A stretch of 64,000 nucleotides of DNA from Rhodosorus marinus CCMP1338 (GCA_029953675.1 JAMWBK010000011.1:248001-312000); one strand, 5' to 3'. Counted from the stretch's first letter, positions 6,719 to 49,776 are shown. Numbers and translations are program-made. Notes: generated by a model not told the origin, from the sequence alone.

Positions 6719-7631
6719 CTGAAAACTCCTATTAGAGTAAACAGAACAGCTGATTTTCCTCTCTCAGCATATTTGTTCCCAATAGAAACGTCGAAGACCC
6801 CTTTCACTCCCTCGATCTCCTACCGCTTCACACTCAAATTAGCGTCATCCTCTATCCCCGCTAAACAAGCTTTTCCATTAAAAAAACCTTCCGCTAATAC
6901 ACGAACGATATTCTAATCTAATTATTTTATTAATTCATGACAACTTTCATTCTAATAAAGAACTTTAACTGTCATTACCTTTTTGGGCCGAAAAATTCGA
7001 AATCAGCAACCTTGCACCTCAAAACTTATTCATTGCGGCTGAATTCTTGATACAAATCACGGCTATGAGGTGACGCTTAAAATGTTTTAGTTTTACTGTC
7101 ATGATCGGGTGTATGACAATTTCAACTTAATATGTGACCGGGCGTTGTTCACGGGGTGATGGTTACATACTTGTCTTCTTCGAATGAGCTCTCTTTTGAA
7201 CGTTCGCTCGCTTCTTACGGAAGCCGCGAGTCAAATTCTTTCCTTACCTATTCTCAAGCTAGAATCTACAATCACAAGCTGCATTAACCCCTCAATCCGT
7301 TCCTCCACGTACTTCCTGAAGAAACTAGGAGACCCTTTATCAAACCAAAGATTTTGATCTCCGCACTGCCTGACTGACTCCCCAGATTCGGTTCAACAGC
7401 TCCCAATAAGGTCACTTTAGACACTCAATCGAAAAGCACTGCAAATTCCTCTATGAACGACGAGCAGACTCAATCGCTTCACTGATGCCTTCACCAATTC
7501 GCAACCTGCAAACCAAGACCATCTACAAGGCGCGAGATTTTGAGCTCTTTACCAGAAATTGCGATGCAGTTCGGTAGCTACTGAGGTAGCAAGGCAGATG
7601 GATTGAGTAGGCGCACAGCAAAAATCTCTTG

Positions 7632-9083
7632 ATGGGATTCATCTGGAACCTAACTCGTCTGAACGGACGGATTGATCGACGTGGAGTCAGGCTCGTATCG
7701 TCCGTTTCCATGAGCTGGGACGTTGCCCGTACTCGTCTGGAACACTTGGCAGACAAGCAGGGCATCGATGCTGCGAAGCTGTTTGTGACGTCGCAGGTGG
7801 AAGGTGATCTGAGACCGCCTGTGGTCAGAGATGACGCCGTTCGAACTTTCGGTAAAGCTGAGGAGGATATCCGGGTCACACTGTACAGGGATCCAGCGTA
7901 CTGGTGTCCATACTGTCAACGCGTTCAGCTTCAGCTCGAGCTGAAGCGGATACCGTATCGCGTGAAGACGGTGAACATGCGATGTTACGGAGAGAAGCCG
8001 GAATACTTTCGGGCGCTTGTACCGTCCGGAGCGATCCCTGCGGTTAGCTTCGACGACGGACCCGTGAAGACCGAGTCGCTTGACTTGATGCTGGAGATCG
8101 AGCGGATGTTCCCAGACAGCTCACCCCTGATTCCGTCGGAGGACAACGAGGAGCTGTACAAAATCTTCCGGAGTTTCATGCAGCTCGAGCGTCGACTCTT
8201 CTCCAGCTGGTTCCAGTACATGTTCAGTGGCGGTTTCGGCCTGTTCGGTGGGGGTAAGGACAACTTTCTCTCAAACCTCGAAGCTTGGGACGCAGCGATG
8301 GGACAGGTCAGCAGCGGACCATTCGCCCTCGGAGGCAGTGTCTGTCTCGTCGACATTCTCGCGGTGCCTTTCGTCGAGAGGATGGTCGCATCGGCGCTGT
8401 ACTGGAAAGGGATCAACATTCGCGAGGACTATCCTGGCATCGACGCCTGGCTCAGAGGGATGGAAACCGAGTTCCCGGCGTACAAGGCGATAAGAGCAGA
8501 TATCTACTCCACTGTGCACAATCTTCCTCCGCAGACGGGGAGGGCGACTTTCGATTCTGGCTCAGACAAGTTTCGTGAGGTTATAGACGGAGTAGGCAGC
8601 AACTGGGAGCTGCCGTTGGTGGGGTCTGCGAGCTATGATCGAATCTATGGCGATGACTCTGAGGCGAAAATCGAGGCCGCGGCCGCGCTCATTCGTGGAT
8701 CGGAGTTCCTGGTGCCGTTTGCGATGCGTTCAGTTGGCGTTCGCAAACGAACCGTCTCCGCTCCGTTGGCAGATCCAGACGCGCAGCCCGTACTGTGGGG
8801 AAAGGAATTTGTGGAACGGGCTCTCTACGGAGTTGCTTTTGCTTTGATCGACGGAACCGAAGCACCGGAGGCGATAGACGCCGCCCAGAGCATTCCTGCA
8901 GATGAGCAGCGCAAAGTAATCGCCTCGCTTGCGTACCTTCGCGATCGAATTGGTGTTCCTCGAGACATGTCACCGGGCGCGGCGAGGCAGCTTCGCTCTC
9001 ACCTCAACTGGTTTTGCAGGAGCATGCTGGGGGAAGAGAGGTGGGCTGAGATCAAGCCCGAGTACGCTGTACTGAGTGCGTGA
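7632..9083 (+). CDS. Cys-type glutathione S-transferase, paralogue of 5261-6718, intronless
   Basis: Same motifs: LYRDPAYWCPYCQR, VPSGAIPAV, ESLDLM, RDRIGVPRDM. First ATG at 7632. Confidence 0.9.
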   Translation: MGFIWNLTRLNGRIDRRGVRLVSSVSMSWDVARTRLEHLADKQGIDAAKLFVTSQVEGDLRPPVVRDDAVRTFGKAEEDIRVTLYRDPAYWCPYCQRVQLQLELKRIPYRVKTVNMRCYGEKPEYFRALVPSGAIPAVSFDDGPVKTESLDLMLEIERMFPDSSPLIPSEDNEELYKIFRSFMQLERRLFSSWFQYMFSGGFGLFGGGKDNFLSNLEAWDAAMGQVSSGPFALGGSVCLVDILAVPFVERMVASALYWKGINIREDYPGIDAWLRGMETEFPAYKAIRADIYSTVHNLPPQTGRATFDSGSDKFREVIDGVGSNWELPLVGSASYDRIYGDDSEAKIEAAAALIRGSEFLVPFAMRSVGVRKRTVSAPLADPDAQPVLWGKEFVERALYGVAFALIDGTEAPEAIDAAQSIPADEQRKVIASLAYLRDRIGVPRDMSPGAARQLRSHLNWFCRSMLGEERWAEIKPEYAVLSA

Positions 9084-9324: not shown

Positions 9325-12300
9325 CTACTTTGTTTCATACCAGGAAGAACCTATGCCGACCGAAACCTTGAGATTCACGTCGCCGGGGAACTCAACGGCA
9401 TTTGCCATTTGGTCAACTACGATCTCCCTGACCGTATCCAATTCGTCAGGGTGTACTTCAAACACAAGCTCATCATGTACCTACGACGTCGCTTCCAAGT
9501 TAGATAGCTATCGCTGGATGGGAGGATGGGACCAGGAGCGGTAGCGCGTGCAACTCACCTGAAGCACCATTCTACTCTTCAAGTTGAACTCATCCAACTT
9601 TTCCGATATGTCGATCATCGCTTGCTTGATGAGGTCCGCCTGAGTCCCTTGGATTGGCATATTTACAGCTACACGTTCTGCAGCCTGGCGTTCGAACGAG
9701 TTGCCGCTAGCTAAGCACGCGAACGAAAAGGATCCGAAGTGAGAGACCTCGTCGACCATCGCCCAAAACGGCGGATCGCGGTCTTACTTATCCCACGAGC
9801 GCGCCTTCGACGGCCAAGAAACGTTCGACTGTATCCGCTCTCCCTTGCATGCTCTATCAGAGAATCCAGAAAGTACTTGATCTTCGGAAATCCGTCGTAA
9901 AAGTCATCGATCACCCTCCTAGCCTCTTCAATACCACTCTGGAGCTGATACGCTAAACCAGGCGCTGAGATTCCATAGGGGATCCCAAAGTTTACCTGCG
10001 CATGGGGCGAATGATGTGAGGCTATTCGGCTAAGCGAAAGGTCCCCAAACACTGTGCTAGGTTGTAGCACCTACCGCTTTGGCATGGTTTCGCAGCTGAG
10101 GAGTGACCTCCGAAGTATCCTGCAGTCCGTAGATACGTATCGCAGTTGACGAATGTATGTCGTCGCTGCGAGAAAATGCTGCCTGCATATGCTCGTCGCC
10201 ACTCAGCGCAGCAAGGATTCTGAGCTCGATCTGCTCGTAGTCCGCGCCGAGAAGTACAAATCCATCTTCTGGCACGAATGCTTTCCGGATGTTTCGACCA
10301 ACGGCATCGCGTACCGGAATCGCCTGGTTCGATAGGAAGGATAAGTTGCTCCGAACGGTCAGCAACTGAGCATGATCCGCAATAAATCTGTAAAAATCTG
10401 TGCTGTTCGCTCATACCTGAAGGTTTGGTCGCGAAAATGACAAACGTCCTGTCACCGCAGCAGTCTGACTGATAAGAGCATGAATGCGAGAATCTTTCTC
10501 CGAAACGCACTTGGCAAGTCCAACCAGGTAAGTGTTCTGGAGCTTTGAAATCGACCGGTGCCGAAGTACCAGCGTTGCCATTTGTCGTACCCGCTCGTCA
10601 GGTTCAGTCTGGAGAAGACCCATGAGAACCTTTTCGGATGTGGACACATTCCTCGTCCGCCTCTTGGTTGGAAGTTTCGCCCCCATCTCGATTAGCACCT
10701 CTGCGAGCTGCTTCGAAGAAGCCAAGTTGAACGGCGCGACGCCTTCGATCGCGAAGATCTCCTTCTCGAGCCTCTCCTTCTGCGAAGCGATCTCCTCCTC
10801 AATGGACTCCAACTTCGTAACATCCACTCGAATCCCTGTGGATTCCATCCGTGCCAGAACTGGAACAAGCTGCATCTCCATCTCCTGGATCCCCGCCAGG
10901 CCGACCTTCTGAATCAGTTTCTCAGCTGCCTTTGCCGTTTCCACTGACAGCAGAGCGACAGTCACAGCATCCTCCTCGGCGTCGGACTGCAGCAGATCCT
11001 CAATATCCCTCGAAGTTGCGAACTGAACTTGTTGTACCCTACTCATGAACGCGTCCGGATCTAATAGGAACGCGACAATGTCCAAGTCTACAAACTGGCA
11101 CCGAGGTAGAATTTTTCGGCCCGTTTCAAACCAACCTGTTCGGGGGAGCTCACACAGTCAATTCGCGCAATCAAGGCTCATGTCCAAAGTCGACATATCA
11201 AAACGTGACCTCTCACCTCTGAGGAAGGGTTTTAACCCCCATCCGACTATCTTCACGTCGCGCCTGTAGAGGATCTCAGTGATTGCTTCCATCGCTGCTC
11301 GGAGGGAACGAACATGCGTCAGTATGGTCAGCACTTCGCTGTTAGTTGTGGCCTCCATTCACAGCTCCCCGCTCACCTGTTCCGTGATCAGGGATCTGGC
11401 ATCCGCGTCCGTCTGGCAGACACACGGATGCGTTCTCTTGTTGGCAGTAGATGCCAACAGTCGACTGCTCACTTAGGGCCTCTACAAAGGAGCTGAAACT
11501 GACAAGCTCTGCAACTCGGCTCGGATCCGCAGGGCTTTCCTCTTCTTCCGCGCCCACGCCAGTGTCGCCAATCTCCAGGAGGCCATCGTCCGCGAGTTGT
11601 CGGACCGGCTGGGGATTGATTCCCAATCCGCGGCACCACTCTTCCACATCGTGCCACACGACAGGGGGCCTCCTCGTAACCTGTTCGAAAAGCTCGTCGT
11701 CGATCTCAGACATGTATTCCTCCAGCGTCAGCACTTGCTTCATATTCTCCGCAATTTCTCGCCCTTCTCGAAGCCTACAAGAAGTTCTCTTCAGTTCCTC
11801 AGTTGGAAACAAAGAAGGCGTCCCAGACCCGAAAAACTCACGTCGTGGATAGCCTTTCCGACTTAACATTTTCAGCATTCTCTAGTATGGACTCCAAGCT
11901 GCCGTATTCCTTCATGAGCTTCAAAACGCCCTTTTCGCCGAATCCTCTGAGCCCCGGTAGACTGTCCGACTTGTCCCCAATCAGCGACCTCATGTCCACG
12001 TGCTGTGAGGGCGGGATTCCCTCGTACTTGTCCTTGAACGTATCCTCGGTGACGGCCTCCCAAGAATCCAAAGGTCCTCTACCAAAGCCCATCACTGGCT
12101 TCAAGATCTGCACGTCGCAACCAAGAAGCTGGTAAAAGTCATGGTCGGTTGAGATAATCGCCGACTTGAACCCTTTGTCCGACGCTTTTCTAGTCATGGA
12201 TGCGATAACGTCATCTGCTTCATAGCCAGGGACCTAACCGCGCAGAGCGTACACACAGTTGCGCCGAGCACTCATCAATATCATGTACTGCTTCTCTAAG

Positions 12301-13038
12301 TCTTCTTCGGTGCAGACGAAGTGCTGGAGTTCTTACCTCCAGGTGAGAGATCCCAATAACATCAGCGAAGGACTTGACAAAGTCAACGGCTCGAACCACC
12401 TCCTCCGGTACAGAATCTCTGGACAACGATTGACGAAGACAGTTTAGCTGCTTCAGCGAGCGGAACAAAAAGCTTGCCGTAGCCGTTTACTTACCTTCCC
12501 GTTTTGTACTCTGGAAAAAGAGCGCTCCGAAAGTCGACACCCTTGACAAGATGTCTCCCATCGAATACAATCACAACGGGCAGATCCCTTCCGGCATAGT
12601 CTCCGATCAGCCTCAGGATACGCCTGAAGAAGACAAACACGGTACCAAACGGAAGCTCCTTCCCTGCGCTGGACAGATTGGTCTTGGACGACGAATAGTA
12701 CGCTCTGAAGATCAAGTTCATCGCGTCCACCAAGTATATTTCCTTCCTATTGTCCGCTCCCTCCCGGCGTCGTTCTCTCGACAGAGCTACACGGACCGAT
12801 CAGAGAGTTTGGAGAAGTCCAAACAAAACGAAAAGAGCTTAAGAATCTCAACGGAATTCTGAAGGATGCGTCTGGGATGATGAACTCGTACTCTCGTTCG
12901 AAGCCGATCGCATCTCAGCAAACGCCGCTACGAGCTGTTTATCCGTAAGACCCGAAAGCTGATTCTCAAGCTTTACGGTTTCGGAAACCACCTGATCCGA
13001 AAGCACGTCTCCAACGTCCACATTTTGACCTTTACCTT
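9325..13038 (-). CDS. polA: Family A DNA polymerase I-type enzyme (5'-3' nuclease, degenerate 3'-5' exonuclease, intact polymerase), multi-exon; 5' end probably lies further upstream
   Basis: 5'-nuclease motifs LVDAMNLIFRAYY, VVIVFDG, PGYEADDVIAS, STDHDFYQLL and GDKSDSLPGLRGFGEK. Polymerase motifs TGRLSFSRPNLQ, motif A GADYEQIELR, motif B RNHAKAV|NFGIPYG, ERQAAERVAVNMPIQGTQAD and motif C LQ|VHDELVFE (intron 9481-9558). Stop at 9325. In-frame exons continue to an acceptor near 13039 with no obvious start codon. Confidence 0.92.
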
Positions 13039-15908: not shown

Positions 15909-17870
15909 TCAGTCGTCTCGATCGGAGATCCCAACCACGACCAACTGTTTTCCGCTTTGCTGATCGTCGACTTCGGATATCTCCTGTCCGCTCTGGTCCC
16001 TTCTTCGTGAGCGGAGAGCGTGAATCCACTTGCTTACGTTCCTCGCAGAAAGCGCTGTGAAGACTATACCACAAGAAAACCACTGCCAGGAGCTCAGCTT
16101 CGTACCAATGACGAAGGAGGATACCATGACGCTTGAAACTTGCTGAACCTGCGGCAAGTGACGATACGGAGAGAAGCATAATGTTAGATGTGTGAGCGCG
16201 GAGAGACGAGAACTAACTCCAACCACAAGCCAAGTTCACTACGTCCGCAACTACAGCAGATGGTCTCACGTCTGCTGAGTTCACCAGCCTGACGAGACGT
16301 GTTCGAGCAGAACAGTGCCGGTCTTCTTGCGCACAGACGCAGCCTCATCGCTCCGCAGGAGCTTTTGTACATCTCGACGCTCACAGCAGACTTTTCGAAA
16401 GTTGTCAGGGCTTCGTAAGACAGCCGTGACAAACCGAAAGCGTTGATCTAGCGCTGATCATAACATTCTGTGTGCCTTTCACAAGCCTAGTGACCGAGCA
16501 CTAGCTTCCGCTCACGCTATCATCAGATACGAACCACATCGCTCAAGACTGCCTCGTCCGCCAGAGCTTCCAAAGACCTTCGTGACAGACTGAATCGTCG
16601 CTCGGGCGCTAATCGTCCCAGTCTGAGCGTTATCCGTAGGTGCGCGGCCTGAGCAATAGCTTCCGCTCATTGCTATCATCAGATCCGACCTCAGCCTCGT
16701 CGACACTTATCAGAGTTCCAAGAGACGGCAATGACAGGCGCGATGATCGTAGCAGACTGAGCGCTAGCGGGAACTACAGCTTCCCGCAAAACCCAGGTTG
16801 GAGTGTCATCGTCCTTCGAACGTGTCGTTCCGAAGTGGATGACCTTCTACTTGTATGAATCGTCCGGTGCGGTGTTCGAAAACGGTATCATCTGTTTGTT
16901 TGAGGAGGATAACTTACTGTGATGACCGTCCCGAAGAAGACTGCACCAAACTCCTTAATCGTCGAAGTAATGAAGAATTGTGCGGATACGGCCCCCAGGG
17001 TGAGGAGGCAGAGCTCCCTTGCGAACTGCCCACTGGAGCTGAGAAGCGACAGTGAGGATCGGAGTGCTCCTCCGGGGATGCAGCTGAGCAAAGACAGGAG
17101 CCCAGAGAACAGGTTCACGTACAGCATCTGGCTGTTCGACGAGAGTTTGTATCCGAGGAAAAGTCGCTCCTGGTACGCCATGAGGAGAGAATCGAAGAAA
17201 ATGTTTCCAAACATCAGCAGCAATCCAATCCAGCTGTTGCCTTCGGTAGCTACTCTGGATGAGATGTTCCCGTTCATGAAAGATGCAGTACCGAGTCCAA
17301 CTAGAACCTTGAGAAGCAGCGCGAAAAGTAGCACAAAAACTCTCAGTTCAACGTAGAGTAAACTCTCGACAGAGATTTGTATTGAAATGTTTCTGAGGCA
17401 GTTGGGAGGCCGCTGTTCTCCTCATTTCTTACCGCCGAAGAATAGTCGATGGTTGTATACGTCCTCTTGGAGAGCAGAGCGGACAGCACCATGACGGGAA
17501 TCAGTTTTGCGCACTTCAGGAGCGCTTGAGTAGGCAGTGAGATCCATTTAAGTGCTTCATATTGACAGGTCGTGGCCAGGAGGTTGGCGACAGAGACGAG
17601 AGGAAAACGATCTATCGGCGCTTGAGGAGCGAGCGCGCGTACGCCGCCGAACGCCACCAACACAACAGCGGCCGCCGCTGCCGCTGAGAGACGATTAGAC
17701 AGTACCAAAAAGCCTGTTTCTGTGAACAACCTCTCCTCGCCCTTCACGACAAACGGCCGGGTCATGATCCGCTCTTGGCAATACGAGTACGTCACCAAAG
17801 ACGCCACGATTCCAATCGCGTACACTACACCCTTCCATGGACTGGCGGCGCCTACTGGAACTGATCCCAT
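15909..17870 (-). CDS. UAA-family nucleotide-sugar/PAPS transporter (SLC35B-like), 3 exons
   Basis: QERIMTRPF, FLVLSNRL, CQYEALKWISLPTQALLKCAKLIPVM, FFDSLLMAYQERLF, QMLYVNLFS. The last exon joins as VIT|VQQVSSVMVSSFVIGTKLSSWQWFSCGIVF across intron 16149-16917. Confidence 0.85.
16480..16760 (-). ncRNA. Candidate intronic structured RNA pair (two ~155-nt related units)
   Basis: Direct repeat ATCTGATGATAGC..TGAGCGGAAGCTA.TGCTC at ~16495-16530 and ~16650-16686, each folding into a GGAA-capped stem, inside the 769-bp intron. Confidence 0.35.
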
Positions 17871-19444: not shown

Positions 19445-19732
19445 GTCTCGCAGACGTGGAGATCGAGCTCTCGACGAGAGTCTCGAGGAGAGGATTAGGT
19501 TTCCTTGGATAAAACTAGGTATTGATGCCATTGCCGCCTGGAACGCGGTCATCAGCGTTTCTCTTCGTGTCGGCCCATGTCTTGCCAACTGTCTCGCAGA
19601 CATGGAGATCGAGCTCTCGACGAGAGTCTCGAGGAGAGGATTCGGTTTCCTTGGGTAAGCTAGGTACTGCTGCCATTGCCGCCTGGATCGCGGTCAGCGT
19701 TTCTCTTCGCGTCGGCCCATGTCTTGCCAACT
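19445..19732. repeat. Tandem duplication (146 + 142 bp) covering the last codons and 3' flank of the pseudo-polymerase gene
   Basis: Units start GTCTCGCAGAC at 19445 and 19591 and both end CTTGCCAACT. Confidence 0.9.
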
Positions 19733-22700
19733 CCGGTTCGAGCCGACATCGAGACAAACTTTGGAAGGCATAAGACATTTTTCATTTCAAAGTCAACAAG
19801 CTCCAGCATTTCCTGTGCGTGAGCCTCGCTGGTTTCGAATACCAATTGCGCTCGATCCTTTGAATTGCCAGTGCCAGATAGGAAAGGGTCAGTATTTATT
19901 CACGAGGAGGAAACCATTCCCAAGTCGCACGCGTACCTGAAACACGAATCTCGCTTCAACTCCTTTAGCTTCGCAGCGCTCCAGTATCCTCAACAGCGCC
20001 TGCTTGACCACGTCTGCCCTTGTACCGTGCCTGATAAGCCTGCTGCATGTTTTCCTAAGCTCTGCTCTCTGTCGATGGGGCCTGGTCGTGTCAAAGTCTA
20101 TGGGCATGCCAACACCCCTAGGGAGCTCCTTCCCTACGCGTGCTGACTCTGGCACCCTCACGTGAATCTTCCTTCCGGTCATCGTGTCCAAATGCCCAAA
20201 CTTCCTCAAAATCATAGACGGCTTATCATTAACCTTATCCAGACTTGCGAGCATTCTTCGGGCTCGTTCCACAGCCTCTGCGTCGTCAGCCAGACCCTCC
20301 AAGGTCGCAACCGATCGCTTATCAGTATCGCATTCTATGACCAAGTCAAGAAACGTGCGAGCCACTTGCCTCTGCTCCTCGCTAACTTTCTCCGGCCTCC
20401 TAGCAAATAAGTAACCGGCTACAACCCGGTCGGGCTCCAAACTCTCGCGAAAGGCCCGCATCAGGTACGGCTCTTCTGAGTATGAGGCGAAAATTCTCCA
20501 CTCCAGATCTTCAAACTCCGTATGTACTATCGACATTCCTTTCTCCGCCACTAGACCATTCCGCATGGCGTCCTTGGAGTTTGCCACCTCGTCAAGAATC
20601 TTCAAGTCTCCTCCTGCATCCAAAGAAGAGTACAAATCCGCCTGCAGGTTAACTTGCGGATGCAAGCGTTCAGAGGCCTGGTCGAAAAAGTCATCCAGTC
20701 GTTCCTCGAGCCCACGCAGAGCTTTATATTTCTTAAGAAGATGACGAGTGCTCTGCAAAGCATCCGCATCCAGCGCTTTCTCGGAGTCAGCAGAGGCGAG
20801 CACTCTCTCCATCTTTGAGACGCTCACTCTCTTACGCTCCCGAAACTGCCGTGTCATTTTCGTCTCGAAAACTGTCGGATTCTGTTCGAGCTCGTCCAGG
20901 AGAGTTTGTGTAGTGGACCTCAGAGCCACTGCTACGTTTTCGCCGATTAACTGTGCAGTCCCCCTAGAAAAGCTTACGCCCTTTGACTCTAGCTCTCCGG
21001 CGACTGAGGAGAGGACAGATTCCTGCTCGTCTACTACCTTCATCAGACCATGTCGAACAATCTTTTCCACTGCAGAGTCCTTGGCGACGATTGCCTTCTC
21101 CGCCTCCTCGATAAAGTCCGCCTCCAGCTCGGCTTGCTCCTCTTCGGTAAAGTCCACTTTTGGATCCTTCATCGACCTCTTAGTCCTCCTCTCAAAGGTT
21201 GGGTTGAGGAGCAGTTTTGCCGACAGCAGGTCGCAGGGACTGCCAATTCGGATACCCCACTTATTGTGCAGGATCTTACAGTCTTCCTTCAGGTTCCAAC
21301 TCAACTTGCCAATGTCTTCCCGCTCTAGGAGCTGCTTAACCAGTGTTAAAGTATTGCGGTCCTCGTGCTCGAAAGATATAAATATGCTCGAAGATCCACT
21401 TTTGGAATCCTTCGTCATCTCTCCGCCAGCACTAAGCGCAATACCTTTCTCATGTGCGCGAATTCCGATGTAGTCCGCAGAGTCCAGAGTCGTAAGGATC
21501 GCGAGGATGCTACTATCATCACTCTGCGCCTTCGGGCGCGGCTCAAGTACTTCGGCCTCAGCCACTGCAGATACTTCTACCACGCTATTTTCGAGACGGA
21601 TACCGACGGATCCACCTTTTTCTTGCGTTTCGGGCATTGCGTCGCATTGAACAGTATCGACCTTATAGTCAGTCTGTGCCCATGCACTGGTGAGCTCGTT
21701 CTCCGCGGATTCTACTAGTCTTTCGATCTCCACAGTCGCCAGGGAAAGCTCCTGAGCGGCCTCCAAATCGCTTGCCTTCGTCTCAACCCTTTCGCTTGGC
21801 ACCTCGACATCTTCGCTGGAGGCGGGTTCCATCTCAAACGCAGAATCGTTTAGGCACGGTGAGGTGGCGGGAACATTGTCAAGCGCGTCTGACGGATCTT
21901 TAACCTCGCTCACAACCGCAGCTCCCACCACTTCCGTATTTGTTGAGTATTGGTCCTCAAGTTCCTTCGCTGTTGGCTCAACAATTTCAACCATAGCGTC
22001 AGTCTGTACCAATGCACTGGCGAACTCATTCGCCACGGATTCAAACGATTTTTCGACCTTCACACTTGCCAAGGAAACCTCTGTAGCAGGTTCCACAGCG
22101 CTGGCCCTGGTCTTATCCATATCGACAAGCACTCCAGCTTTAACCACTTCCGTGGTCATCGAAGGTTGATCCACAAGTTCCTCTACCGTCGGCTCAATTG
22201 AGCTGGGACGCATATCAGTCAATGGCTCGCTAATATATGAAGTTTCCTTCGCCTTGACCTTGGCCAGGTCGTACTTGAGCAAAGGGACATCCACCAGCAA
22301 CCTCTCTATCTCGAGATCCGAAAGTGTGACTTTTGTAAAGCTTGTCAACGTCCTAAAAAGAAGCGGATCTATTCCATCCCACCCTGCGGAATTGACTGCG
22401 TGCTTGTGTCTGAATTTCATTATCGCCGAGTAAGCCTCAGACCCCTTTTCGTACCCAGGAGGCCATGTGCCCATTACCTTGCTGTCCAACAAGGCCACTC
22501 TGACCGATTTCGAATACCCGACTTCTTCGGCAGCTTTCCAGAGCCAATACAGTTCGCCCGGAACCTGTGGGCGATCTTCACAGAATCGTTGGCGATATTT
22601 AGCTCGGAATTCGCTCGCTTTCTTCTGCAACAACCGCGTCCGTCCTGGGCGCAGCAAAGAGTCCAACTTTAGCCTCGGGCTCAACAAGGAAACCTTGTAC

Positions 22701-24334
22701 CCTTCTTCTATCGCCCGCTTGTGAGCTGCTCCGATTGTATTGGCGACGTTCCTCCCTTCTATCCATGAGCATCCACTCTCCCGGAGTAAATGTCCCACTA
22801 AAGCTGTAATTTCGTGGTGCTTGTAAGCATCCGTCTCTTCATACATGAAGTGATGAAAGTCGCTCGGGCTCGTCTCCTGCAGAACAAAAACGACGGCTGC
22901 CCCTTCCCTCTTCGCGTGCGCACACACAGCTTCAGCGTGTAGCAATGCGTTCCTGATCCTCACTCGGGTGCTCGTCTCTTCATCCTTGCAATCCTTCACG
23001 ATCTTGTTTTGAATCCCAATGTAGTGGTCCAGGTCTGCGAGAATCACCTCGTTTCTAGAGGAGTTCTTCCACGCCGTTTCCTCGTTCCCTCCACTGTCAT
23101 TTGACTGAACCAAGTTTGGTAAACATTTCTCCAGCCTCCGGCAGTACCGCTTCGACTTTGCAACAGGAACGCGTTTCTTAAGAGCGTCCTTCAGAGACTG
23201 CAAGCAGCCTCTGGCTGCTAACGGTGACCCGGACTCCGTCGACTGCCCACGAAGCACTTGAATCAAAATCTTCCTGCTCATTCTCAATTCCTCTCTATCC
23301 CTCAGCAAAATGCTCTGCAACCTAGTCAATTTTTTGCCAGCCTTCTGCCGCGTCGCGGCGTTAAGGATCAACTCGTTCAATGTCTTGTCGCCTTTCAGCC
23401 TCCGACGAAGATCGGTTTTCTTTGCCGCGCGATCCAGTATTAATCTATCGACCTCCTGCATTATCACTCGTGAATCCGAGCTTATGCTGTTACGCAGGAT
23501 TTTCCACCTTCTCTGAGACAACTTCTTCGCATTCTCACCGATGGACTTTTCAGCGTCCTTCGACTCCTCGGGAAACAGCAGATGGATTCGTTCGCTGTAG
23601 CCTAGGCACTTCACCTTCTCGTCGTTTGTGACAATAATCTAAAGGACACGAAGTGTCGATGACCTTTAGCACATAACCTATTGAAATATTGCGTATTCAG
23701 CCCTAGAGGGCTGAAAGTGAGGATGGTGACAAACCTGCGGATTTTCTCCAGAACCTAGGGCCACCTCCAGTTTGTCCTCAATTCGAGCTCCTAAGGCTCT
23801 CAAGAAGTCGAGTTTCGGTTGCTCGATCCTCGAATCCCCTGTACACATTTTCACGAAAATGAGCGATCGGGGCACAAGCTTCTTTTCAAGCAATCCGGTG
23901 ACAACGGATACGAATTCCGTAAACCTCATTCTCTTGAAAAGTGGGCAGTCTCCGTCGATAATTGCAGTTTTCACCGTCTCTTTCTGCTTGCTTCGGCTGC
24001 CCTGATCTCTTGAACCACCAGACTCCGTGGAGTCATTGACGCCTGTCTGCCGAGCACCGAAGTCGGGGGTTCTAATCATCAAATAAAAACACGATGGAGC
24101 GAGTCAATCAACCGTGGAATCCTCAGTTAGTCGCCCACGTCCCAACAAACCGTACCTCTTCTTCTCTCCGGGCGCACTCCTCCGCAGCTTCCCATTCCTA
24201 AACTTCCGCAGCCGCTGCCGCTCAATACTTGAAGCTCCCACCCGGACCCCTTCATTGTTCCTATCCAGGCCCAGCTCCCCTTCCTCAAACCGTCCCACCC
24301 TCAGCCTCACCAGAGGATGTCCCACAAACGCCAT
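19660..24334 (-). CDS. Catalytically degenerate Pol I paralogue (pseudo-polymerase), ~1,470 aa, probable plastid presequence, 4 exons
   Basis: Exons 24334-24156, 24071-23735, 23638-19937 and 19857-19660, with an MAFVGHP... start. Pol I fold remnants: KLSWNLKEDCKIL..DLLSAKLLLNP, ERLHPQVN, motif A HTEFEDLEWRIFASYSEEPYLMRAF, motif B QRQVARTFLDL, GTRADVVKQAL, motif C FQ|DRAQLVFE and terminal GVGKTWADAK. The long reading frame is intact. Confidence 0.8.
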
Positions 24335-40802: not shown

Positions 40803-42339
40803 TTCAACACTCGTGAATCCAAAACCCGCTGCAGATAATTGGACGAAAATCTAGGTCACAGCAATCCAACTGACAGCTCAAGTTTTGCTTGTAGAAATTG
40901 CTCGCAAAGGCGGCTGGCTCCAGTCAATTTGCTTTTTTTTTTTCGAACAACGGAGCCCATACGAGCGAGGTAGGGACCCACAGATTGACTGCGCAAAAGC
41001 TGCCTCAGTTTATCAATGGCAATCCCTCTTCAACCGCTGCGAGACCTGCAGACCCTCTTGTCATCTTCCTGCGGCCGGTTGTGCATGCAAGTTTTGAGTG
41101 AAATTCAGACACAAGACAAATTCCGGAATCAGCGACCAGCTCGCCGACGCGGGAGGACACGAGTGCCACGCCATCTTGTTCCGGTTTTGCAATTCATGCA
41201 CAAACACTGCGCTATGCCTTCAACAACGTTCCTGGTAAAGCGCCGGCAGATTCCTGGGTTGCGTCTTTCGCGCATCTATCAACATCCTTCCAATCCGTCA
41301 AGTCAACCACTCAGAAGCGACGACAACACATTCAACCGACGCCAATCCAAAACCCTACCCTATTGACATCCACATTTCCTAAACAATCTTCAAAAAACAA
41401 ACTAAAAACAACAAATTACCTCATATCTATCGTATCTAATCCCAGAAATATCCAAATAAAGATCTCTTCCCTAAAACTCAGACTGCGTGACCTCTCACCA
41501 ATTCCTATTTTCATAATTTAGTACCTGCGTTCAATATCTATATTTCACAAATATACGTCTAGATTTTACTATCTGCCTAGATTAAAATCTGAATACTAAA
41601 TAAATAAAAAATAACCGGGTACAAGCTCATAATTATGACAGTATTTAAACATAATCAGGAAATATCCTCTATCGTATAAAAATTATTATCCTACTAGTTT
41701 CAAATATTGATTGGCTAATGCCTTTCAACGCGGAGGATTTTCAGCGAGATATTTGATGGAAGCCGAAATAGACATGCGAAAAACAAATCTAGACAATATT
41801 TCTAAACTACCTAGATATAATGAATTAAAAAATTATAATTCTCCTAAATCATAATTATGCCCGAATATGTTTTTAATTAGAGATTGAGTAGATCAAGGAG
41901 ACTGAGATTGGATATTCAATGAAGCAGAAACAGAATGGTGGAGGGAGGGGGGTTGGATGGATGGATACTAAGCACATTGTACAATATATTTGGATTTGTA
42001 ATAAATAAATGAGCGATTTGGGTTGTGTACGAATGAAATGTGCGTTGTACTAAATCGATTTTACTGGTCTTGGAAGGTTCTGGGTGGTGAGAATGGTCAA
42101 GTCATTTGGCTAACTGGTGGCTGAGTGTCTGAGAAGGCCGATTGGGGAGGGTGAAGGTGGATGGAAGATTGACTCCTTCTGAAGGAACTCAGGCGAACAG
42201 ATTGTTTGCTTTTCTTTTGTTGTGGGTGGTATAAAAGGTTGGTTGGTAGGTTTGAGGGGTGCCAGTTTATGGCTTGGACAGGCAGTCAGATATGGGCTGA
42301 TGAGCGGATGAAGTTTGGGTTTGGTTGTTGACTGATGAA

Positions 42340-43398
42340 ATGGAGTTTGAGAGGGTTAGGGATGGAAGCGGTGGGATGGTGGGGTGTGAGAGGGGCTTTG
42401 GGACTGTTTGCTCGGAGGATGGATCCTTGAGGCTTGGAAAGTGCGATGGGGCGGTGGCCGCTCTGCAGAGGTTCGGCGGTGACGGAGCAGTGAGTGGATC
42501 CGAGGATGGGCTAGTCAGGCTCTGGGATGTACGGAAAGAGGTTGAGGTTGGGAGCGTGGATGCACATGATGGACCCGTGACTGATGTGCGGGTGTGTGAG
42601 CTTGAGGGTCTGGTGTACAGCAGCGGTGACGATGGGTACGTGAAGGTCTGGGACGTAAGGACCGGGAGGTGTGTTCGAGAGTTTCACGGTCACAACGATC
42701 CATGCAGTCAGATTGCGCTTTTAGGAAACGATAAGGTTGCTAGCGCTGGAGTGGATGGAGCCGTGTGGGTGTGGTCCACGGCCACTGGAGAGAGAATCGC
42801 AGGTTGCCAGGTCGATTATGCGTGGCCAGTCTGGTGCATCAAAGCGTTTGATGCTCACCATGTGATCTCTGGAGCTCATGATGGAGTAATTAGGGTGCTT
42901 GACGTTCAGAGCGGGCAGATGAGCGTCCTGAGAGGCCATGCTGGGACGGTCTGGGAGCTCGAAGCTGTCTCGGACAAGGCCATTGCGAGCGCCAGCGCCG
43001 ATGGAACCATCAGAATTTGGAATGTAGAGACGATGGAAGAGGTCAGAGTGCTCAGAGGACATTCTGCATCGGTCGAAGCACTGAGCTACATCGGAAATGG
43101 GCGACTGCTTTCCGGATCATTCGACCGCTCCGTACGGCTATGGAACGTCGACACAGGAGAGCCAACCTGCCAGTCCATGGAACGCCACCGAGGATACGTT
43201 CGATGCGTAGCCCCGTACTCGGACTACGTCCTCTCCGCCTCCAACGACGCCACACTCCGAATTTGGAACAAGACAGGAACGCTCGTCGCAACCCTAGAAA
43301 CCTCCCACCCAATCGAAGCCGTTGTCACCCTGAAAGGAACCATCGTCAGCGGTGAATCCAATGGAATCATACGATGCTGGCGACCACCTATGTCGTAG
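42340..43398 (+). CDS. WD40-repeat protein (about 7 repeats), intronless
   Basis: Repeated GH...S.S.D..V+LW+ units (SGSEDGLVRLWD, SSGDDGYVKVWD, SASADGTIRIWN, SGSFDRSVRLWN). Confidence 0.9.
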   Translation: MEFERVRDGSGGMVGCERGFGTVCSEDGSLRLGKCDGAVAALQRFGGDGAVSGSEDGLVRLWDVRKEVEVGSVDAHDGPVTDVRVCELEGLVYSSGDDGYVKVWDVRTGRCVREFHGHNDPCSQIALLGNDKVASAGVDGAVWVWSTATGERIAGCQVDYAWPVWCIKAFDAHHVISGAHDGVIRVLDVQSGQMSVLRGHAGTVWELEAVSDKAIASASADGTIRIWNVETMEEVRVLRGHSASVEALSYIGNGRLLSGSFDRSVRLWNVDTGEPTCQSMERHRGYVRCVAPYSDYVLSASNDATLRIWNKTGTLVATLETSHPIEAVVTLKGTIVSGESNGIIRCWRPPMS

Positions 43399-43835: not shown

Positions 43836-44471
43836 CTAATAGCTCGGCGCTGGGAACTTTCTAATGTATTGCGGGTTGGCAATCTCGTCACCGATAAACT
43901 TCCCGACATCGACGTGATGGATTTCGTACTTTGATCCCTTGGGATGGTACAGGTCCGCAGTCTTGTAAGGCTTGCTTCGACCCTTTCCGAGTGCTGGAAG
44001 TCGTACGACAGTCCACTCGAGGTTGTTGTCCTCAGCAAGGATGGTCTCCATCCGCCCAATGTCGATCAAGCTGTTGATCAAGTACAGCCGAAGGAGTCTG
44101 TTGTACATCCACGGAGCGTTTTTATCGTAGTCAACACCAGCTGCTGATAGCACCAACAGGCGTTTGATACCCTGAGCCTCCATCGCACGTCTGGCGCTCC
44201 TTACGCCGTCGCTGTACACAGTCGTATACTTCCGCGCGGCGACAATACTTCCAGATCCAGTCGCCATCACAACCGCATCAGATCCCCTCACAGCATTCTC
44301 CATGCTGGTCGAGTCGTCGAACCTGATCTTCCTCACCTCGACGCCCAGGAAGTCCTTCATAGTCTCGGGCCTCCGTACGGCTGCAATCACCGCCCATCCT
44401 TTGCCTATGCAGTACTTGCAGATCTCCTGTCCACTCGACCCGTTCGCTCCAAATACAGTCACTTGCACCAT
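43836..44471 (-). CDS. NAD(P)H-binding flavin/biliverdin-IXbeta reductase-like protein, diverged copy
   Basis: 211 aa; Rossmann motif VFGANGSSGQEI, AAVRRP, GSDAVV, WTVVRLP, IHHVDVGKF. Confidence 0.85.
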   Translation of the reverse strand: MVQVTVFGANGSSGQEICKYCIGKGWAVIAAVRRPETMKDFLGVEVRKIRFDDSTSMENAVRGSDAVVMATGSGSIVAARKYTTVYSDGVRSARRAMEAQGIKRLLVLSAAGVDYDKNAPWMYNRLLRLYLINSLIDIGRMETILAEDNNLEWTVVRLPALGKGRSKPYKTADLYHPKGSKYEIHHVDVGKFIGDEIANPQYIRKFPAPSY

Positions 44472-46057
44472 ACTTCAATAATCAATCAGAAGCAACTTCA
44501 CCCAATCTGTCTTTAAATCTTCTCCGTGATTCCCCTGCCTCTACACGTTTGCTCAACTCGCCTGTCTTGGCACACATCCACAACCAACCCCACTCAAACC
44601 ATCCGGCATATCCCACTATATAGTCTTCCTCGCCAGGCGACCACTATTCCCAGACAAAATCCCAGTCAAGACATCAAGACGGTCACACAGTCTCACAAAC
44701 CAGTCTCAGTCAGAGACTCACACAGCACTGTCGGTCATCCAGCACAAAACTCGTTGAAACGCATCGATCAAAATATAAAAAAACATAATTAATAATAGAT
44801 AATATCCAATACAACCAATAATGTAACCGAATGGCTATTTAAAAAACGAATAAACCCAATGAAACCTCGCCAAGGGAGTTTGTGTTATGTCTATTGACCA
44901 ATTATGTATCGTTATAGTTCCAGATTCTATCTCAGCAATCAATATTACCATATGTTTCTTTTTTAAATAAAGATTGAACAGTTCGAAATATAATATAATC
45001 GAAATAATTAGTCCACTAGGGAAATTAGTGAGTATTATGCAATCAACCGAAATACAGTAATAATTATCGAAGCGCTCCAGTTTGAAAAACGGAAAAAAGT
45101 GGAGCTGTTAAATAAAGGAACTATTTAGAGGTTCTTCTCAGCGGAGTTTTGTTTTGCTTTTTAGAATATTTTCTGTAGGATCGGGATTTTTTTGCTGGAT
45201 GACCAAAAAGCGGAACTAGCGGAACGTGCAAAAAGTCTTAGAGGCTTCAGGGGGTTGATGAGGGGAGGAGGTAGTTGCAAGAGGTATCTTCTCGACATCC
45301 GTTGGAATCTTTGAGGTGATTTCGAGCCCGTGGCCGATGGGTATTGGGCGAAGGGGTTCAGAAGAGCAAGCAGGAACAGTCCCCGGTGCGATGTGGGTGA
45401 TTTTCGGCCACTGATGAAGGCGATATTTCCTTGCTGTTAAGAAGGGAGACAGCTCTGCTGGTAGTTGCTGGCGGATTGTGAAGATCTCTGTCTTGGTGGA
45501 TACGCGTCTGCATCAAAGGGTATTTTGCAGATCCTGGATTTCCCTGCGAAGCTGAATTGCGTTTCAGCTTGTGCCGAGGTTAACTGTAGACACACTGGGC
45601 CCTTCAACTTATCGCGCACGAGGGGTTTGCTCGTGGGAGGTCTTCACATTTCGTGAGCATGGAACCTCTAGGTGTCTGCTACTAACTCCAGACCAGTAGT
45701 GTCCATAAAATATAGAGAGATGCGCGTTTTAGAGCTTCTATGGGTAGAAAGTCGTATGCGCCCGCGTTTCCATTTGCACGGAGCGTATTGGATTTGAGTT
45801 GTCCGGTTGCAACTCACCCGAAGGCGCACTAAACTAACTAAGAGGCTCTGGAGAAGCTTACATCACAGCACGGGAATCAGAAGTTCGTCTTTTGGGATGG
45901 CGCTAATTAGGAGAAGGGGACGAACCCCCCAAGCTAGTATCGTTGATTGCACAATTTCAATTGTTTTCCACGTTTATTTGAGGTCTGTATTTTTCTGTTC
46001 ACGATATCTTTTTACAATATATTGCGCATGGTGCACTACTACTACAATCCAACGAAA

Positions 46058-46693
46058 TTAGTAGCTCGGAGCGGGGAACTTCCTGATGAATTCCTCGTTT
46101 GCAATTTCGTCACCGATAAACTTCCCTACGTCCACGTGATGGATTTCGTACTTGGATCCCTTGGGATGGTACAGTTCCGCCGTCTTGTAAGGCTTGCTCG
46201 CGCCTTTTGACAGTGCCGGAAGTCGCACTACAGTCCAATCCAGGTTGTCGTCCTCAGCAAGGATCGTCTCCATCCGAGCAACGTCAATCATCATGTTCAT
46301 CAAGAACAACCTGAAAACTCGGTTGAACATCCACGGAGCTTGTCTATCGTAGTCGATACCAGCCGATGATAGCACTAGAAGACGTTTGATTCCCTGAGCC
46401 TCCATCGCCCTCCTCACGCTACGTACTCCATCACTGTACACCGTCGTGTACTTCCTCGCCGCCACAACACCTCCAGATCCAGTCGCCATCACAACCGCAT
46501 CCGATCCGCTCACACCCTTCTCCATACTAATCCCGTCATCGAAGCTGATCTTCCTCACCTCCACCCCCGCAAACCCAACCATGGTCTCCGGCCTCCTTAC
46601 AGCAGCAATCACCTTCCATCCCTTGCCTATGCAATATTTGCAGATCTCCTGACCACTCGATCCGTTCGCTCCGAATACAGTCACTTGCACCAT
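46058..46693 (-). CDS. Flavin/biliverdin reductase-like protein, tandem copy 2
   Basis: 211-aa ORF; protein identical to copies 3 and 4. Confidence 0.85.
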   Translation of the reverse strand: MVQVTVFGANGSSGQEICKYCIGKGWKVIAAVRRPETMVGFAGVEVRKISFDDGISMEKGVSGSDAVVMATGSGGVVAARKYTTVYSDGVRSVRRAMEAQGIKRLLVLSSAGIDYDRQAPWMFNRVFRLFLMNMMIDVARMETILAEDDNLDWTVVRLPALSKGASKPYKTAELYHPKGSKYEIHHVDVGKFIGDEIANEEFIRKFPAPSY

Positions 46694-47904
46694 CTTTCAA
46701 TAATCAATCAACAACAACCTCACTCAAATCTCTCGCGAAATGCCTGTCTGCTATTCTCCTTATCTCCTCTTTTCCTCAACTTGCTTGTAATGACAGACAT
46801 GCACAAACCACCCCACCAGAGTCATCCAAAGACCTCAATTATATACCCTTCCTCGCACCGATGGACCCCGATTCCCACAGACCATCTCACGTGCTCGTGC
46901 AAAACGGTCGCCCAGCATACCACCCTCATCCCGTGCAGAAATCTACCAAATCGACATTGGTCACCCAAACATCGACCGGAAGATCACCATCAAAATATAT
47001 AACCAAAAACCGAATACGCAATTCTACCAATCAATCAAGCCGTTTGTTGAGTTGGAGAAACAAGGCGTATAATTTGTTATTTTATCAATAGAAATATGTT
47101 CTCGATTTGTCAAAATAAATACTCCAAGTACTGGACGACCAACTTACATACAGAGTGGATTGCATGCTCTTGAATTATAGAATAAAGTGAACAGGAGAGG
47201 TGACATTACACTATATCTGAAAAAAAGAAGTATTTTTTTTGAAGGAAGAGGGAGTTGATTGATGGTGGAATTGTATTTCAAGTTCCATGTTCTTGAGTTC
47301 CCTGAATTGAAAACTGAAAAGTTTTGAACCAGTTTAGTTGGGTAGCTTTGCGGAGTGCCAGCGAATAGGGGCTGTTTCAAAAGGTCACCATGGACCGCTT
47401 CAGATGGTTTAGTCAGTAACAGTGTGCCGCTACAGTAGTGCACATGATGGTATCTAAACGAGTCCAAACCCCCTTTCCCTGGGTACCTTCAATACGAAGG
47501 GAATGTTCAGTTTGACGGGATGTTTTCAGCGATAAATTACGGAGGAATGGAGCCAAATTTATCAGCTCAGGTTAGGTTTGCTCTGTAGTTGTCTAGGATC
47601 ATGCTGTGAGATATGCCGGTCTGTTTGGCAAAGGTTTCCTCAAGCACAGGGTTCACCGCAGTACTGCCGGTATGGTGTGCTTCTTTTTTTTTATTTGAGT
47701 AGAACGTTGTTTAAGAGGTAAATCAGAGCTATTACTGGATCTCAAGATTCGTTGGCGAGTATTTTTTGATAGGGGCAAGCAGAACATTGCGGATTGCACA
47801 AGTTCAATTGTTTTCCACGTTTATTTGAGGTCCGTATTTTTCTGTTCACGATATCTTTGTACAATATACTACGCATGGTGCACTAGTACTACAGTCCAAC
47901 GAAA

Positions 47905-48540
47905 TTAGTAGCTCGGAGCGGGGAACTTCCTGATGAATTCCTCGTTTGCAATTTCGTCACCGATAAACTTCCCGACATCCACGTGATGGATTTCGTACTT
48001 GGATCCCTTGGGATGGTACAGTTCCGCCGTCTTGTAAGGCTTGCTCGCGCCTTTTGACAGTGCCGGAAGTCGCACTACAGTCCAATCCAGGTTGTCGTCC
48101 TCAGCAAGGATCGTCTCCATCCGAGCAACGTCAATCATCATGTTCATCAAGAACAACCTGAAAACTCGGTTGAACATCCACGGAGCTTGTCTATCGTAGT
48201 CGATACCAGCCGATGATAGCACTAGAAGACGTTTGATTCCCTGAGCCTCCATCGCCCTCCTCACGCTACGTACTCCGTCACTGTACACCGTCGTGTACTT
48301 CCTCGCCGCCACAACACCTCCAGATCCAGTCGCCATCACAACCGCATCCGATCCGCTCACACCCTTCTCCATACTAATCCCGTCATCGAAGCTGATCTTC
48401 CTCACCTCCACCCCCGCAAACCCAACCATGGTCTCCGGCCTCCTTACAGCAGCAATCACCTTCCATCCCTTGCCTATGCAATATTTGCAGATCTCCTGAC
48501 CACTCGATCCGTTCGCTCCGAATACAGTCACTTGCACCAT
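47905..48540 (-). CDS. Flavin/biliverdin reductase-like protein, tandem copy 3
   Basis: 211-aa ORF; protein identical to copies 2 and 4. Confidence 0.85.
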   Translation of the reverse strand: MVQVTVFGANGSSGQEICKYCIGKGWKVIAAVRRPETMVGFAGVEVRKISFDDGISMEKGVSGSDAVVMATGSGGVVAARKYTTVYSDGVRSVRRAMEAQGIKRLLVLSSAGIDYDRQAPWMFNRVFRLFLMNMMIDVARMETILAEDDNLDWTVVRLPALSKGASKPYKTAELYHPKGSKYEIHHVDVGKFIGDEIANEEFIRKFPAPSY

Positions 48541-49776
48541 CTTTCAATAATCAATCAACAACAACCTCACTCAAATCTCTCGCGAAATGCCTGTCTGCTA
48601 TTCTCCTTATCTCCTCTTTTCCTCAACTTGCTAGTAATGACAGACATGCACAAACCACCCCACCAGAGTCATCCAAAAACCTCAATTATATACCCTTCCT
48701 CGCACCGATGGACCACGATTCCCACAGGCCATCCTGCGTTCTCGTGCAAAACGGTCGACCAGCATACCACCCTCATCCCAAGCAGAAATCTACCAAATCG
48801 ACATTGGTCACCCAGACATCGACCGGAAGATCACCATCAAAATATATAACCAAAAACCGAATACGCAATTCTACCAATCAATCAAGCCGTTTGTTGAGTT
48901 GGAGAAACAAGGCTTATAATTTGTTATTTTATCAATAGACATACGTTCTCGATTTGTCAAAATAAATACTCCAAGTACTGGACGACCAACTTACATACAG
49001 AGTGGATTGCATGCTCTTGAATTATAGAATAAAGTGAACAGGAGAGGTGACATTACGCTATATCTGAAAAAAAGAAGTATGTTTTTAGGAAGAGGGAGTT
49101 GATTGATGGTGGAATTTTATTTCAAGTTTCATGTTCTTGAGTACATGAATTGGAAACTGAAAAGTTTTGAATCAGTTTAGTCGGGTAGCTTTGCGGAGTG
49201 CCAGCGAATGGGGAGCTGTTTCAAAAGAAGGTCACCATGGACCGCTTCAGATGGTTTAGTCGGTAACAGTGTGCCGCTGCAGTAGTGCACATGATCATAT
49301 CTAAACGAGTCCAAACCCCGTCTCCCTGGGACCTTCAACACGAAGGGAATGTTCGGTCTTTGCCTCCTTGGAGTAAGGGTTTGACGGGATGTTTTTTCAG
49401 CGATAAATTATGGAGGAATAGAGCCGAATGTATCAGCTCAAGTTAGGTTTGCTCTGTAGTTGTCTAGCATTATTCTGTGAGACATGCCGGTCTGTTTAGC
49501 AAAGGCTTTCCTCAAGCACAGGGTTCACCGCAGCCCTGACGGTATGTTGTGCTTCTTTTTTTTTATTTGAGTAGAACGTTGTTTAAGAGGTAAATCAGAG
49601 CTATTACTGGATCTCAAGATTCGTTGGCGAGTATTTTTTGGTAGGGGCAAGCAGAACATTGCGGATTGCACAAGTTCAATTGTTTTCCACGTTTATTTGA
49701 GGTCCGTATTTTTCTGTTCACGATATCTTTTTACAATATATTGCGCATGGTGCACTACTACTACAGTCCAACGAAA

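Follow-up and report, generated by a model that had tools for sequence, protein, structure and literature searches.

The plastid Pol I-type polymerase rgPolA was reportedly treated by Moriyama et al. in 2008. It belongs to Rhodophyta and Glaucophyta, was reported from every red alga surveyed (Harada et al. 2024, PMC10877234), and was localised to the plastid in Cyanidioschyzon (PMC10877234). Here, we analysed a 64,000-nucleotide stretch of nuclear DNA of the red alga Rhodosorus marinus CCMP1338 (GCA_029953675.1, JAMWBK010000011.1:248001-312000; hereafter the window), which carries on its minus strand, at 19660-24334, a four-exon gene encoding a 1,471-residue relative of Pol I, referred to below as the pseudo-polymerase. 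We classify it as a pseudoenzyme derived from Pol I/rgPolA, and the best overall explanation, to which we assign a probability of about 0.6, is that of an expressed and selected, non-catalytic Pol I paralogue that would act as an adaptor in organelle DNA replication or repair. Like rgPolA, it is encoded by a nuclear gene of a red alga and follows the order of 5'-nuclease, vestigial 3'-5' exonuclease and family-A polymerase; unlike rgPolA, its catalytic residues are all replaced, it is about 500 residues longer (an N-terminal module that we call N1, a basic region and an acidic linker), and it was found only in Stylonematophyceae. With bacterial Pol I (Klenow, Taq, Bst) it shares the C-terminal 600-residue fold, significant sequence homology and structural residues, whereas the motif A Asp, the motif C Asp/Glu, the O-helix Lys/Phe/Tyr, TGRLSS/PNLQNIP, the Gln of NxPIQG and the EADD/DKD carboxylates have been lost. 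POP, an active 3'-5' exonuclease and polymerase without a 5'-nuclease, differs, as the pseudo-polymerase retains a 5'-nuclease-derived domain and has no exonuclease motifs.

Inactive polymerase homologues are known from other families. ImuB, a catalytically inactive Y-family homologue in bacterial mutasomes with ImuA, DnaE2 and the beta-clamp as partners (PMC12926913), likewise is a polymerase homologue devoid of catalytic carboxylates and kept by selection, and its adaptor role beside active polymerases offers a functional analogy, although it is a bacterial Y-family protein with known partners. The C-terminal half of Pol epsilon is an inactivated polymerase-exonuclease module (PMC2669801), thus also a duplicated unit of polymerase and exonuclease that lost catalysis and was retained as a structural element; unlike the pseudo-polymerase, it is of family B, fused to the active module within one polypeptide, and universal in eukaryotes. 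A third comparison concerns the mitochondrial Pol I-like paralogues of Trypanosoma brucei, among which POLIC has an N-terminal UCR with a non-catalytic role (PMC12068568) in localisation or distribution. Here, too, several organellar family-A paralogues occur in a lineage with minicircular organelle DNA, and the N-terminal region concerned is lineage-specific, but POLIC keeps an essential active polymerase domain and is of unrelated lineage and origin, and a mitochondrial role of the pseudo-polymerase would be speculative. Dead homologues of families B and Y, represented by the Pol epsilon C-terminal half and ImuB, are established scaffolds, and the gene described here would be a clear family-A example. 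The text of two family-A surveys and of an organellar inventory, as far as covered by text searches (PMC10201439, PMC12926913, PMC10877234), describes no conserved catalytically inactive family-A group, and our literature searches found no paper describing such a red-algal pseudo-Pol I; within the literature searched, the term "rgPolA" was confined to the paper that coined it and its preprint.

A preliminary description, made from the sequence alone, had proposed a gene of about 1,470 codons with one uninterrupted 3.7-kb exon and an intron at 19858-19936. Mapping the protein back onto the window reproduced these coordinates exactly. The coding sequence starts with the ATG at 24334, ends with the TAG at 19662-19660 and comprises 1,471 codons plus stop in exons at 24334-24156, 24071-23735, 23638-19937 (3,702 nt) and 19857-19660, separated by GT-AG introns of 84, 96 and 79 nt, the last of which (19858-19936) is in phase 0 and lies between Q1406 and D1407. 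The protein is 100 % identical to NCBI KAJ8901219.1 of R. marinus, annotated as "hypothetical protein NDN08_007068", and a long minus-strand open reading frame at 19889-23614 forms part of it. Two MMETSP transcripts from another R. marinus strain (P0002 and P0003) encode proteins of 1,473 and 1,474 residues that are 83-84 % identical to the window protein and keep the frame across all three junctions, including FVFQ|DRAQLVFE; one cluster of these transcripts includes the EukProt R. marinus / MMETSP0011 entry. As these independent transcripts share both frame and junctions, the gene is transcribed and spliced as proposed, and none of them uses an alternative splice that would restore the motif C residues HDE, which the preliminary description had named as evidence that would overturn its reading.

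P0002 and P0003 are 100 % identical to each other over residues 701-850 and differ by 7 % elsewhere, a pattern suggesting that the transcripts are mosaics assembled from two alleles. The 3' end of the gene shows a further peculiarity, a 146-bp tandem duplication at 19450-19732 (2.0 copies, 91 % match; Tandem Repeats Finder) that extends over the final 24 codons and the stop codon into the beginning of the 3' untranslated region, in which the C-terminal peptide matches a second time. The second, untranslated copy encodes ...KRNADDRVPGGNGINT and is nearer than the translated copy to the C-terminal sequence found in the other R. marinus strain (ADDRVPGGNDSSI).

The central observation is that the residues on which Pol I catalysis depends are replaced at the polymerase, the 3'-5' exonuclease and the 5'-nuclease sites alike. 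All motif peptides quoted in the preliminary description were recovered by translation: the motif A remnant HTEFEDLEWR at 20524-20495, the motif B remnant RQVARTFLDLVIEC at 20371-20330, the motif C remnant split over FVFQ (19948-19937) and DRAQLVFE (19857-19834), and, in the 5'-nuclease domain, VANT (22747-22736) in place of EADD and PRL (22678-22670) in place of DKD. In a mapping that was ungapped and concordant in HMMER and MAFFT (Taq numbering unless stated), the motif A Asp (D610, Klenow D705) corresponds to E1213, and the motif C residues H784, D785 and E786 (the latter two Klenow D882/E883) correspond to R1408, A1409 and Q1410. Of the O-helix pattern R-x3-K-x3-F-x3-YG, R659, K663, F667 and Y671 read R1262, R1266, D1270 and E1274, the Gln of NxPIQG is H1376, and the primer-contact motifs TGRLSS and PNLQNIP are unrecognisable. 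What survives is largely architectural. The Rhodosorus protein keeps 34 of the 93 columns that are invariant, or vary in a single case, among 13 active Pol I enzymes, and most of these are Gly, Leu, Ala, Phe or Trp with a structural role; R1220, G1320, R1328, D1381, K1384 and W1453 are among the retained residues.

The two nuclease domains have fared similarly. Of the DEDD carboxylates of the 3'-5' exonuclease, the Exo I segment is absent altogether, the Exo III Tyr/Asp pair reads Phe/Ala, and only the Exo II-like N954/D958 are kept. The 5'-nuclease domain is invisible to HMMER alone and emerged in a profile-profile comparison of residues 380-650 with a profile made from 52 such domains of Pol I and from the neighbouring Pol I of the window, where hhalign gave a score of 35.6 (P = 1.9e-4) against 13.5 +/- 1.8 (maximum 17.4) for 40 column-shuffled controls, i.e. 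about 12 standard deviations above them; neither of its metal-binding carboxylate motifs, EADD and DKD, is present. The predicted protein is thereby confirmed to lack the catalytic residues at each of the three active sites of Pol I, the carboxylates as well as the residues that bind dNTP and primer, and with all three centres dead, a two-metal mechanism, be it of a polymerase or of a nuclease, is very unlikely.

Descent from Pol I is nevertheless well visible, also in the order of 5'-nuclease-like, vestigial 3'-5' exonuclease-like and polymerase domains, which is kept as the preliminary description had stated. The search with profiles and predicted structures that it had suggested recovered both the homology and the large-fragment fold. 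With the single sequence, homology to Pol I structures was real but weak (phmmer against PDB, E ~1e-6). The NCBIfam models for Pol I (NF004397 / TIGR00593) gave E = 5.5e-25 with a score of 88 bits, where the curated cut-off is 720, and 62.8 against 600 for the second model, hence below the equivalog threshold for DNA polymerase I; a profile of the family described below matched bacterial Pol I with E down to 2e-31 (Z = 1e6), and a precomputed PF00476 match lies on the window protein. Hidden Markov models and the predicted fold both identify the C-terminal 600 residues as homologous to the Pol I large fragment, and sequence and fold homology to palm, fingers and thumb place the protein in family A by descent. 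An AlphaFold2 model of residues 864-1471 reached pLDDT 77.6 and pTM 0.78, and its best full-length Foldseek matches in PDB were the Bst, Klenow and M. smegmatis Pol I large fragments (E ~1e-23, TM 0.65-0.71); as the input alignment consisted mostly of true Pol I sequences, this likeness arises partly by construction and is supporting rather than independent proof.

The orthologue search proposed in the preliminary description was successful. In a HMMER scan of 1.84 billion representative proteins, only two clusters matched at E < 1e-10, namely that of R. marinus and a 1,445-residue protein of Bangiopsis sp. CCMP1999 (P0014, EukProt/MMETSP; E = 5.8e-43), which is encoded identically by a 4.7-kb JGI transcript contig; all remaining matches were ordinary Pol I at E 5e-10 or weaker. 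A profile search of a word-indexed collection of 5.8 billion proteins returned ordinary Pol I only and no further family members, and a family-pattern scan of JGI metagenome contigs yielded no member, its single hit (Ga0114996_10324329) being a bacterial Pol I C-terminus with QVHDE intact. Both genera belong to Stylonematophyceae, to which the family looks restricted, a suggestive pattern that reflects two genera and the coverage of the databases. The Rhodosorus and Bangiopsis proteins are colinear over their full length at ~24 % identity, and at the catalytic positions they carry different substitutions: the motif A Asp is Glu in Rhodosorus and Ser in Bangiopsis, the motif C Asp/Glu are Ala/Gln and Asn/Glu, the motif B Arg is kept in Rhodosorus and is Gln in Bangiopsis, while in the rest of the O-helix Lys has become Arg, Phe has become Asp and Tyr has become Glu/Asp; opposite VANT, the Bangiopsis protein has GLRA in the alignment. 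Between the genera, other blocks are strongly conserved (IIDGDCxLFKRM, LSWxLKEDC, DLxxAxLLNP, LRKxG...GRKI, CLPxxV). Divergent catalytic sites next to conserved blocks are what would be expected if catalysis was abandoned before the split and selection acted on other surfaces, and the comparison shows, as far as aligned residues can tell, that catalysis was lost before Rhodosorus and Bangiopsis separated.

The two proteins also share an order of seven parts, of which several have no counterpart in Pol I. A presequence-like N-terminus (residues 1 to ~88; 24071..24334 for residues 1-60 with intron 1, continuing to ~23987) has a net charge of +9 and Phe at position 3. It is followed by N1 (residues 89-200, 23555..23986, spanning intron 2; IIDGDCPLFKRM ... 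LLEKKLVPR ... IIVTNDE), which at 30-36 % identity against ~24 % overall is among the blocks best conserved between Rhodosorus and Bangiopsis, and which matched nothing in PDB or NCBIfam. We considered N1 as a second degenerate copy of the 5'-nuclease, which the comparisons left unsupported (hhalign 16.4 against 14.3 +/- 2.6 for shuffled profiles; P = 0.28 for N1 against the recognised 5'-nuclease domain, N2). Next come a basic, predicted-helical region (residues 201-364, 23063..23554; net charge +22, pI 10.7), the degenerate FEN-like 5'-nuclease domain (residues 365-545, 22520..23062; by hhalign and translation), and a poorly conserved acidic linker (residues 641-870, 21545..22234; net charge -36). 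The helices of the basic region were seen in an AlphaFold2 model of the N-terminal 590 residues built from three close sequences, whose pLDDT was 38 and which was otherwise not used. Self-BLAST did not bear out an internal repeat that the linker seemed to contain. The vestigial 3'-5' exonuclease-like domain (residues 871-1005, 21140..21544; by Pol I alignment and the AlphaFold2 model) contains the strongly conserved block LSWNLKEDC...DLLSAKLLLNP, with 42 % identity in the family over residues 951-1000, and leads into the degenerate polymerase domain (residues 1006-1471, 19663..21139, spanning intron 3) that bears the remnants of motifs A, B and C.

These conserved parts raise the question of whether the protein might still be an enzyme, either through a shifted or non-canonical site made of E1213, D1216, E1218 and D1407, or because N1 (DGD ... 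TNDE) is an active PIN/NYN-like nuclease positioned by a dead Pol I body. D1216, E1218, D1270 and D1407 are indeed family-invariant and at most 2-3 residues away from canonical positions, and N1, besides its conservation, shows an alternating beta/alpha-like pattern with acidic residues at the presumed strand ends, as read from the sequence. However, in the gap-free HMMER alignment of motifs A and C, the two essential Asp correspond to Glu/Ser and Ala/Asn, the O-helix Lys/Phe/Tyr and the primer-binding motifs are gone and unconserved between the genera, and N1 matches no known nuclease family. An alternative alignment of motif C that would keep D1407 by means of a 2-residue insertion found no support in HMMER and stays as a caveat. 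Altogether, we regard residual enzymatic activity as improbable.

Could the gene simply be a decaying Pol I duplicate that by chance is still open and transcribed? Judged by protein-level proxies, this is very improbable. Two features would suit such a relic, namely the complete loss of catalytic motifs and the divergence between R. marinus strains, which at 16-17 % of amino acids is about twice the 9 % of the neighbouring Pol I; the faster rate also fits a relaxed but real constraint. Against decay, frames of 1,445-1,474 residues are intact in at least four sequences from two genera, and the seven-part architecture has remained colinear over the full length despite 24 % identity. Had the 16.5 % divergence been neutral, ~14 stop-creating changes would be expected between the strains, and none was seen. 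Furthermore, conservation differs sharply between domains and linker: folded regions are 92-100 % identical between strains in many 50-residue windows, as opposed to 52-58 % over residues 701-800 and 69-80 % elsewhere in the linker. Together with expression, this indicates that purifying selection maintains the gene, as the preliminary description had surmised, and comes close to refuting the relic. Between the window strain and the MMETSP strain, the acidic linker is the fastest-evolving part of the protein.

The presumed parent, or a sister copy, lies close by. An intact multi-exon Pol I gene was located on the same strand at about 9334..12745 (minus; open reading frames and tblastn with bacterial Pol I), 6.6 kb downstream of the pseudo-polymerase. 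Its protein model is a manual assembly, approximate in the part upstream of the polymerase domain, while the motif exons and junctions quoted here were read directly; they show GADYEQIELR, RNHAKA|VNFGIPYG and LQ|VHDELVFE, the canonical polymerase motifs that had been claimed for it, and an intact EADD. From its features, it is probably of the rgPolA type of PMC10877234. It is 91 % identical to an MMETSP transcript product of 307 residues (P0004), whose agreement with the window protein (9793-10881) stops after ...ARTVIDD, the remainder being unrelated; a retained intron or a frameshift in the assembly could be the cause. The two paralogues are linked rather than strictly adjacent, given the genes between them, namely fragments of an open reading frame for a multi-pass membrane protein (16888-17870, minus; possibly a transporter, by eye) and another gene at 14.0-14.9 kb. 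A third Pol I-like match in the window, at 61.4 kb, was returned by one query with E = 0.003 and dismissed as chance.

That the pseudo-polymerase is a paralogue of this neighbour, as first suggested in the preliminary description, is supported by two shared characters. A phase-0 intron interrupts both genes at the same aligned position immediately before motif C (...MVLQ|VHDELVFEV in the neighbour, ...FVFQ|DRAQLVFET in the pseudo-polymerase), with flanks that align without gaps; the probability of this coincidence was estimated at ~0.3 % (the neighbour's 4 introns in ~430 alignable codons, thus ~4 in 1,290 positions), a figure that the common CAG|G proto-splice site raises somewhat. In addition, both carry a 2-residue insertion, [LF]P..V, near the C-terminus (FPGDVNL; CLPKFVSM / CLPRYVNL), which was absent from all of the ~35 bacterial Pol I C-termini inspected (~35 of ~35), and both lack the Exo I segment. 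It is thus quite likely, on these gene-structure and alignment characters, that the pseudo-polymerase arose by duplication of an rgPolA-type gene in the nuclear genome, and its intron-free 3.7-kb exon, set against the intron-rich neighbour, suggests later intron loss.

Alternatively, horizontal transfer of a separate bacterial Pol I might have given rise to the gene. Against the family profile, several bacterial sequences of Pol I outscore the neighbour (114 versus 70 bits), the neighbour ranking only 56th to 105th among the Pol I matches, and in a neighbour-joining tree, the family was monophyletic in 100/100 bootstraps and joined to the neighbour, which was the only presumed rgPolA included, in 0/100. 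Yet the bacterial matches are extremes drawn from 1.84 billion proteins, and the ranking is biased by how matches were selected; both branches are long, and since distances are saturated (>2 substitutions per site), the placement in the tree is uninformative. The shared phase-0 intron position, the insertion, the loss of Exo I and the physical linkage all speak for duplication within the nuclear genome, and we consider an independent origin unlikely.

The protein has gained ~280 family-specific N-terminal residues (N1 and the basic helical stretch) as well as the long acidic linker. Following from these results, we propose that it works without catalysis, most likely as an adaptor that binds DNA or protein during the replication or repair of organellar, probably plastid, DNA. 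In this model, the Klenow-like and FEN-like folds would provide the surfaces for binding, and N1 and the basic extension would carry a new, selected function. The preliminary description had suggested an organellar nucleoid scaffold, a DNA-binding regulator or a partner of the active Pol I, and each of these may apply. What selection appears to have preserved, namely the Klenow-like and FEN-like folds, N1, the basic region (+22) and the acidic spacer (-36), is compatible with such a role, which by analogy would parallel that of other dead polymerase homologues working as scaffolds. To the ranking, the tree and the composition of the modelling alignment, all of which tell against this picture, four more points have to be added. 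TGRLSS, PNLQNIP and the Gln of NxPIQG are eroded as well, and binding of a primer-template in the usual manner is therefore doubtful. The invariant acidic residues D1216, E1218 and D1407, 2-3 positions from the canonical sites, carry a small chance of binding metal non-canonically. Finally, the presequence holds 11 acidic residues in 88, and the first Phe of the Bangiopsis N-terminus appears only at residue 10.

The last two points bear on the compartment in which the protein would act. For rhodophytes, a plastid-targeting motif based on F has been described (PMC7038456), and the basic N-terminus of the R. marinus protein, MAF... with Phe3, fits it, which makes plastid targeting of the pseudo-polymerase possible. 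Conversely, the acidic-rich presequence, the missing early Phe in Bangiopsis and the restriction of the family to Stylonematophyceae would be in line with a role in the mitochondrion, whose genome is minicircular in this class, or else with a nuclear or cytosolic one, in which the basic region could serve for nuclear localisation or nucleic-acid binding. With the R. marinus sequences starting MAF... in agreement with the F-based motif, and the presumed parent rgPolA being plastid-localised in Cyanidioschyzon (PMC10877234), we hold a role outside the plastid to be doubtful, and the adaptor with a probable plastid address remains our preferred reading.

One version of the mitochondrial option deserves mention. 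Minicircular mitochondrial genomes occur across Stylonematophyceae (R. marinus genome paper, PMC10250338), and the family is found in the one red-algal class whose mitochondrial genome is broken into minicircles. By analogy with the kinetoplastid Pol I-like proteins, one may speculate that it is a Pol I-derived, non-catalytic factor peculiar to Stylonematophyceae, in which N1 and the dead body together organise or regulate an unusual organelle genome, most strikingly the minicircular mitochondrial one. Although we rate this as rather improbable, it would, if true, represent the first conserved family-A pseudo-polymerase with a dedicated structural role. The pseudo-polymerase would add a component to the poorly known red-algal organellar DNA-maintenance toolkit. 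As an example of an inactive family-A polymerase, it has an active presumed parent identifiable close by and an orthologue that shows the loss of catalysis to be old. It also illustrates how a homology-based annotation such as "family A palm domain-containing protein" can mask a non-enzyme.

The remainder of the window contains further genes. Four tandem intronless genes at 43836-50412 (minus), spaced ~1.85-2.2 kb apart, each encode a 211-residue NAD(P)-binding protein resembling biliverdin IX-beta / flavin reductase (PDB 1hdo, E = 1e-6), and the protein sequence is the same in three of them. Two open reading frames on the plus strand appear to be ordinary flanking genes: one of 357 codons at 42325-43398, with WD40-type repeats by eye, and one of 484 codons at 7629-9083, whose N-terminus has a CPYC thioredoxin-fold / GST-like character.

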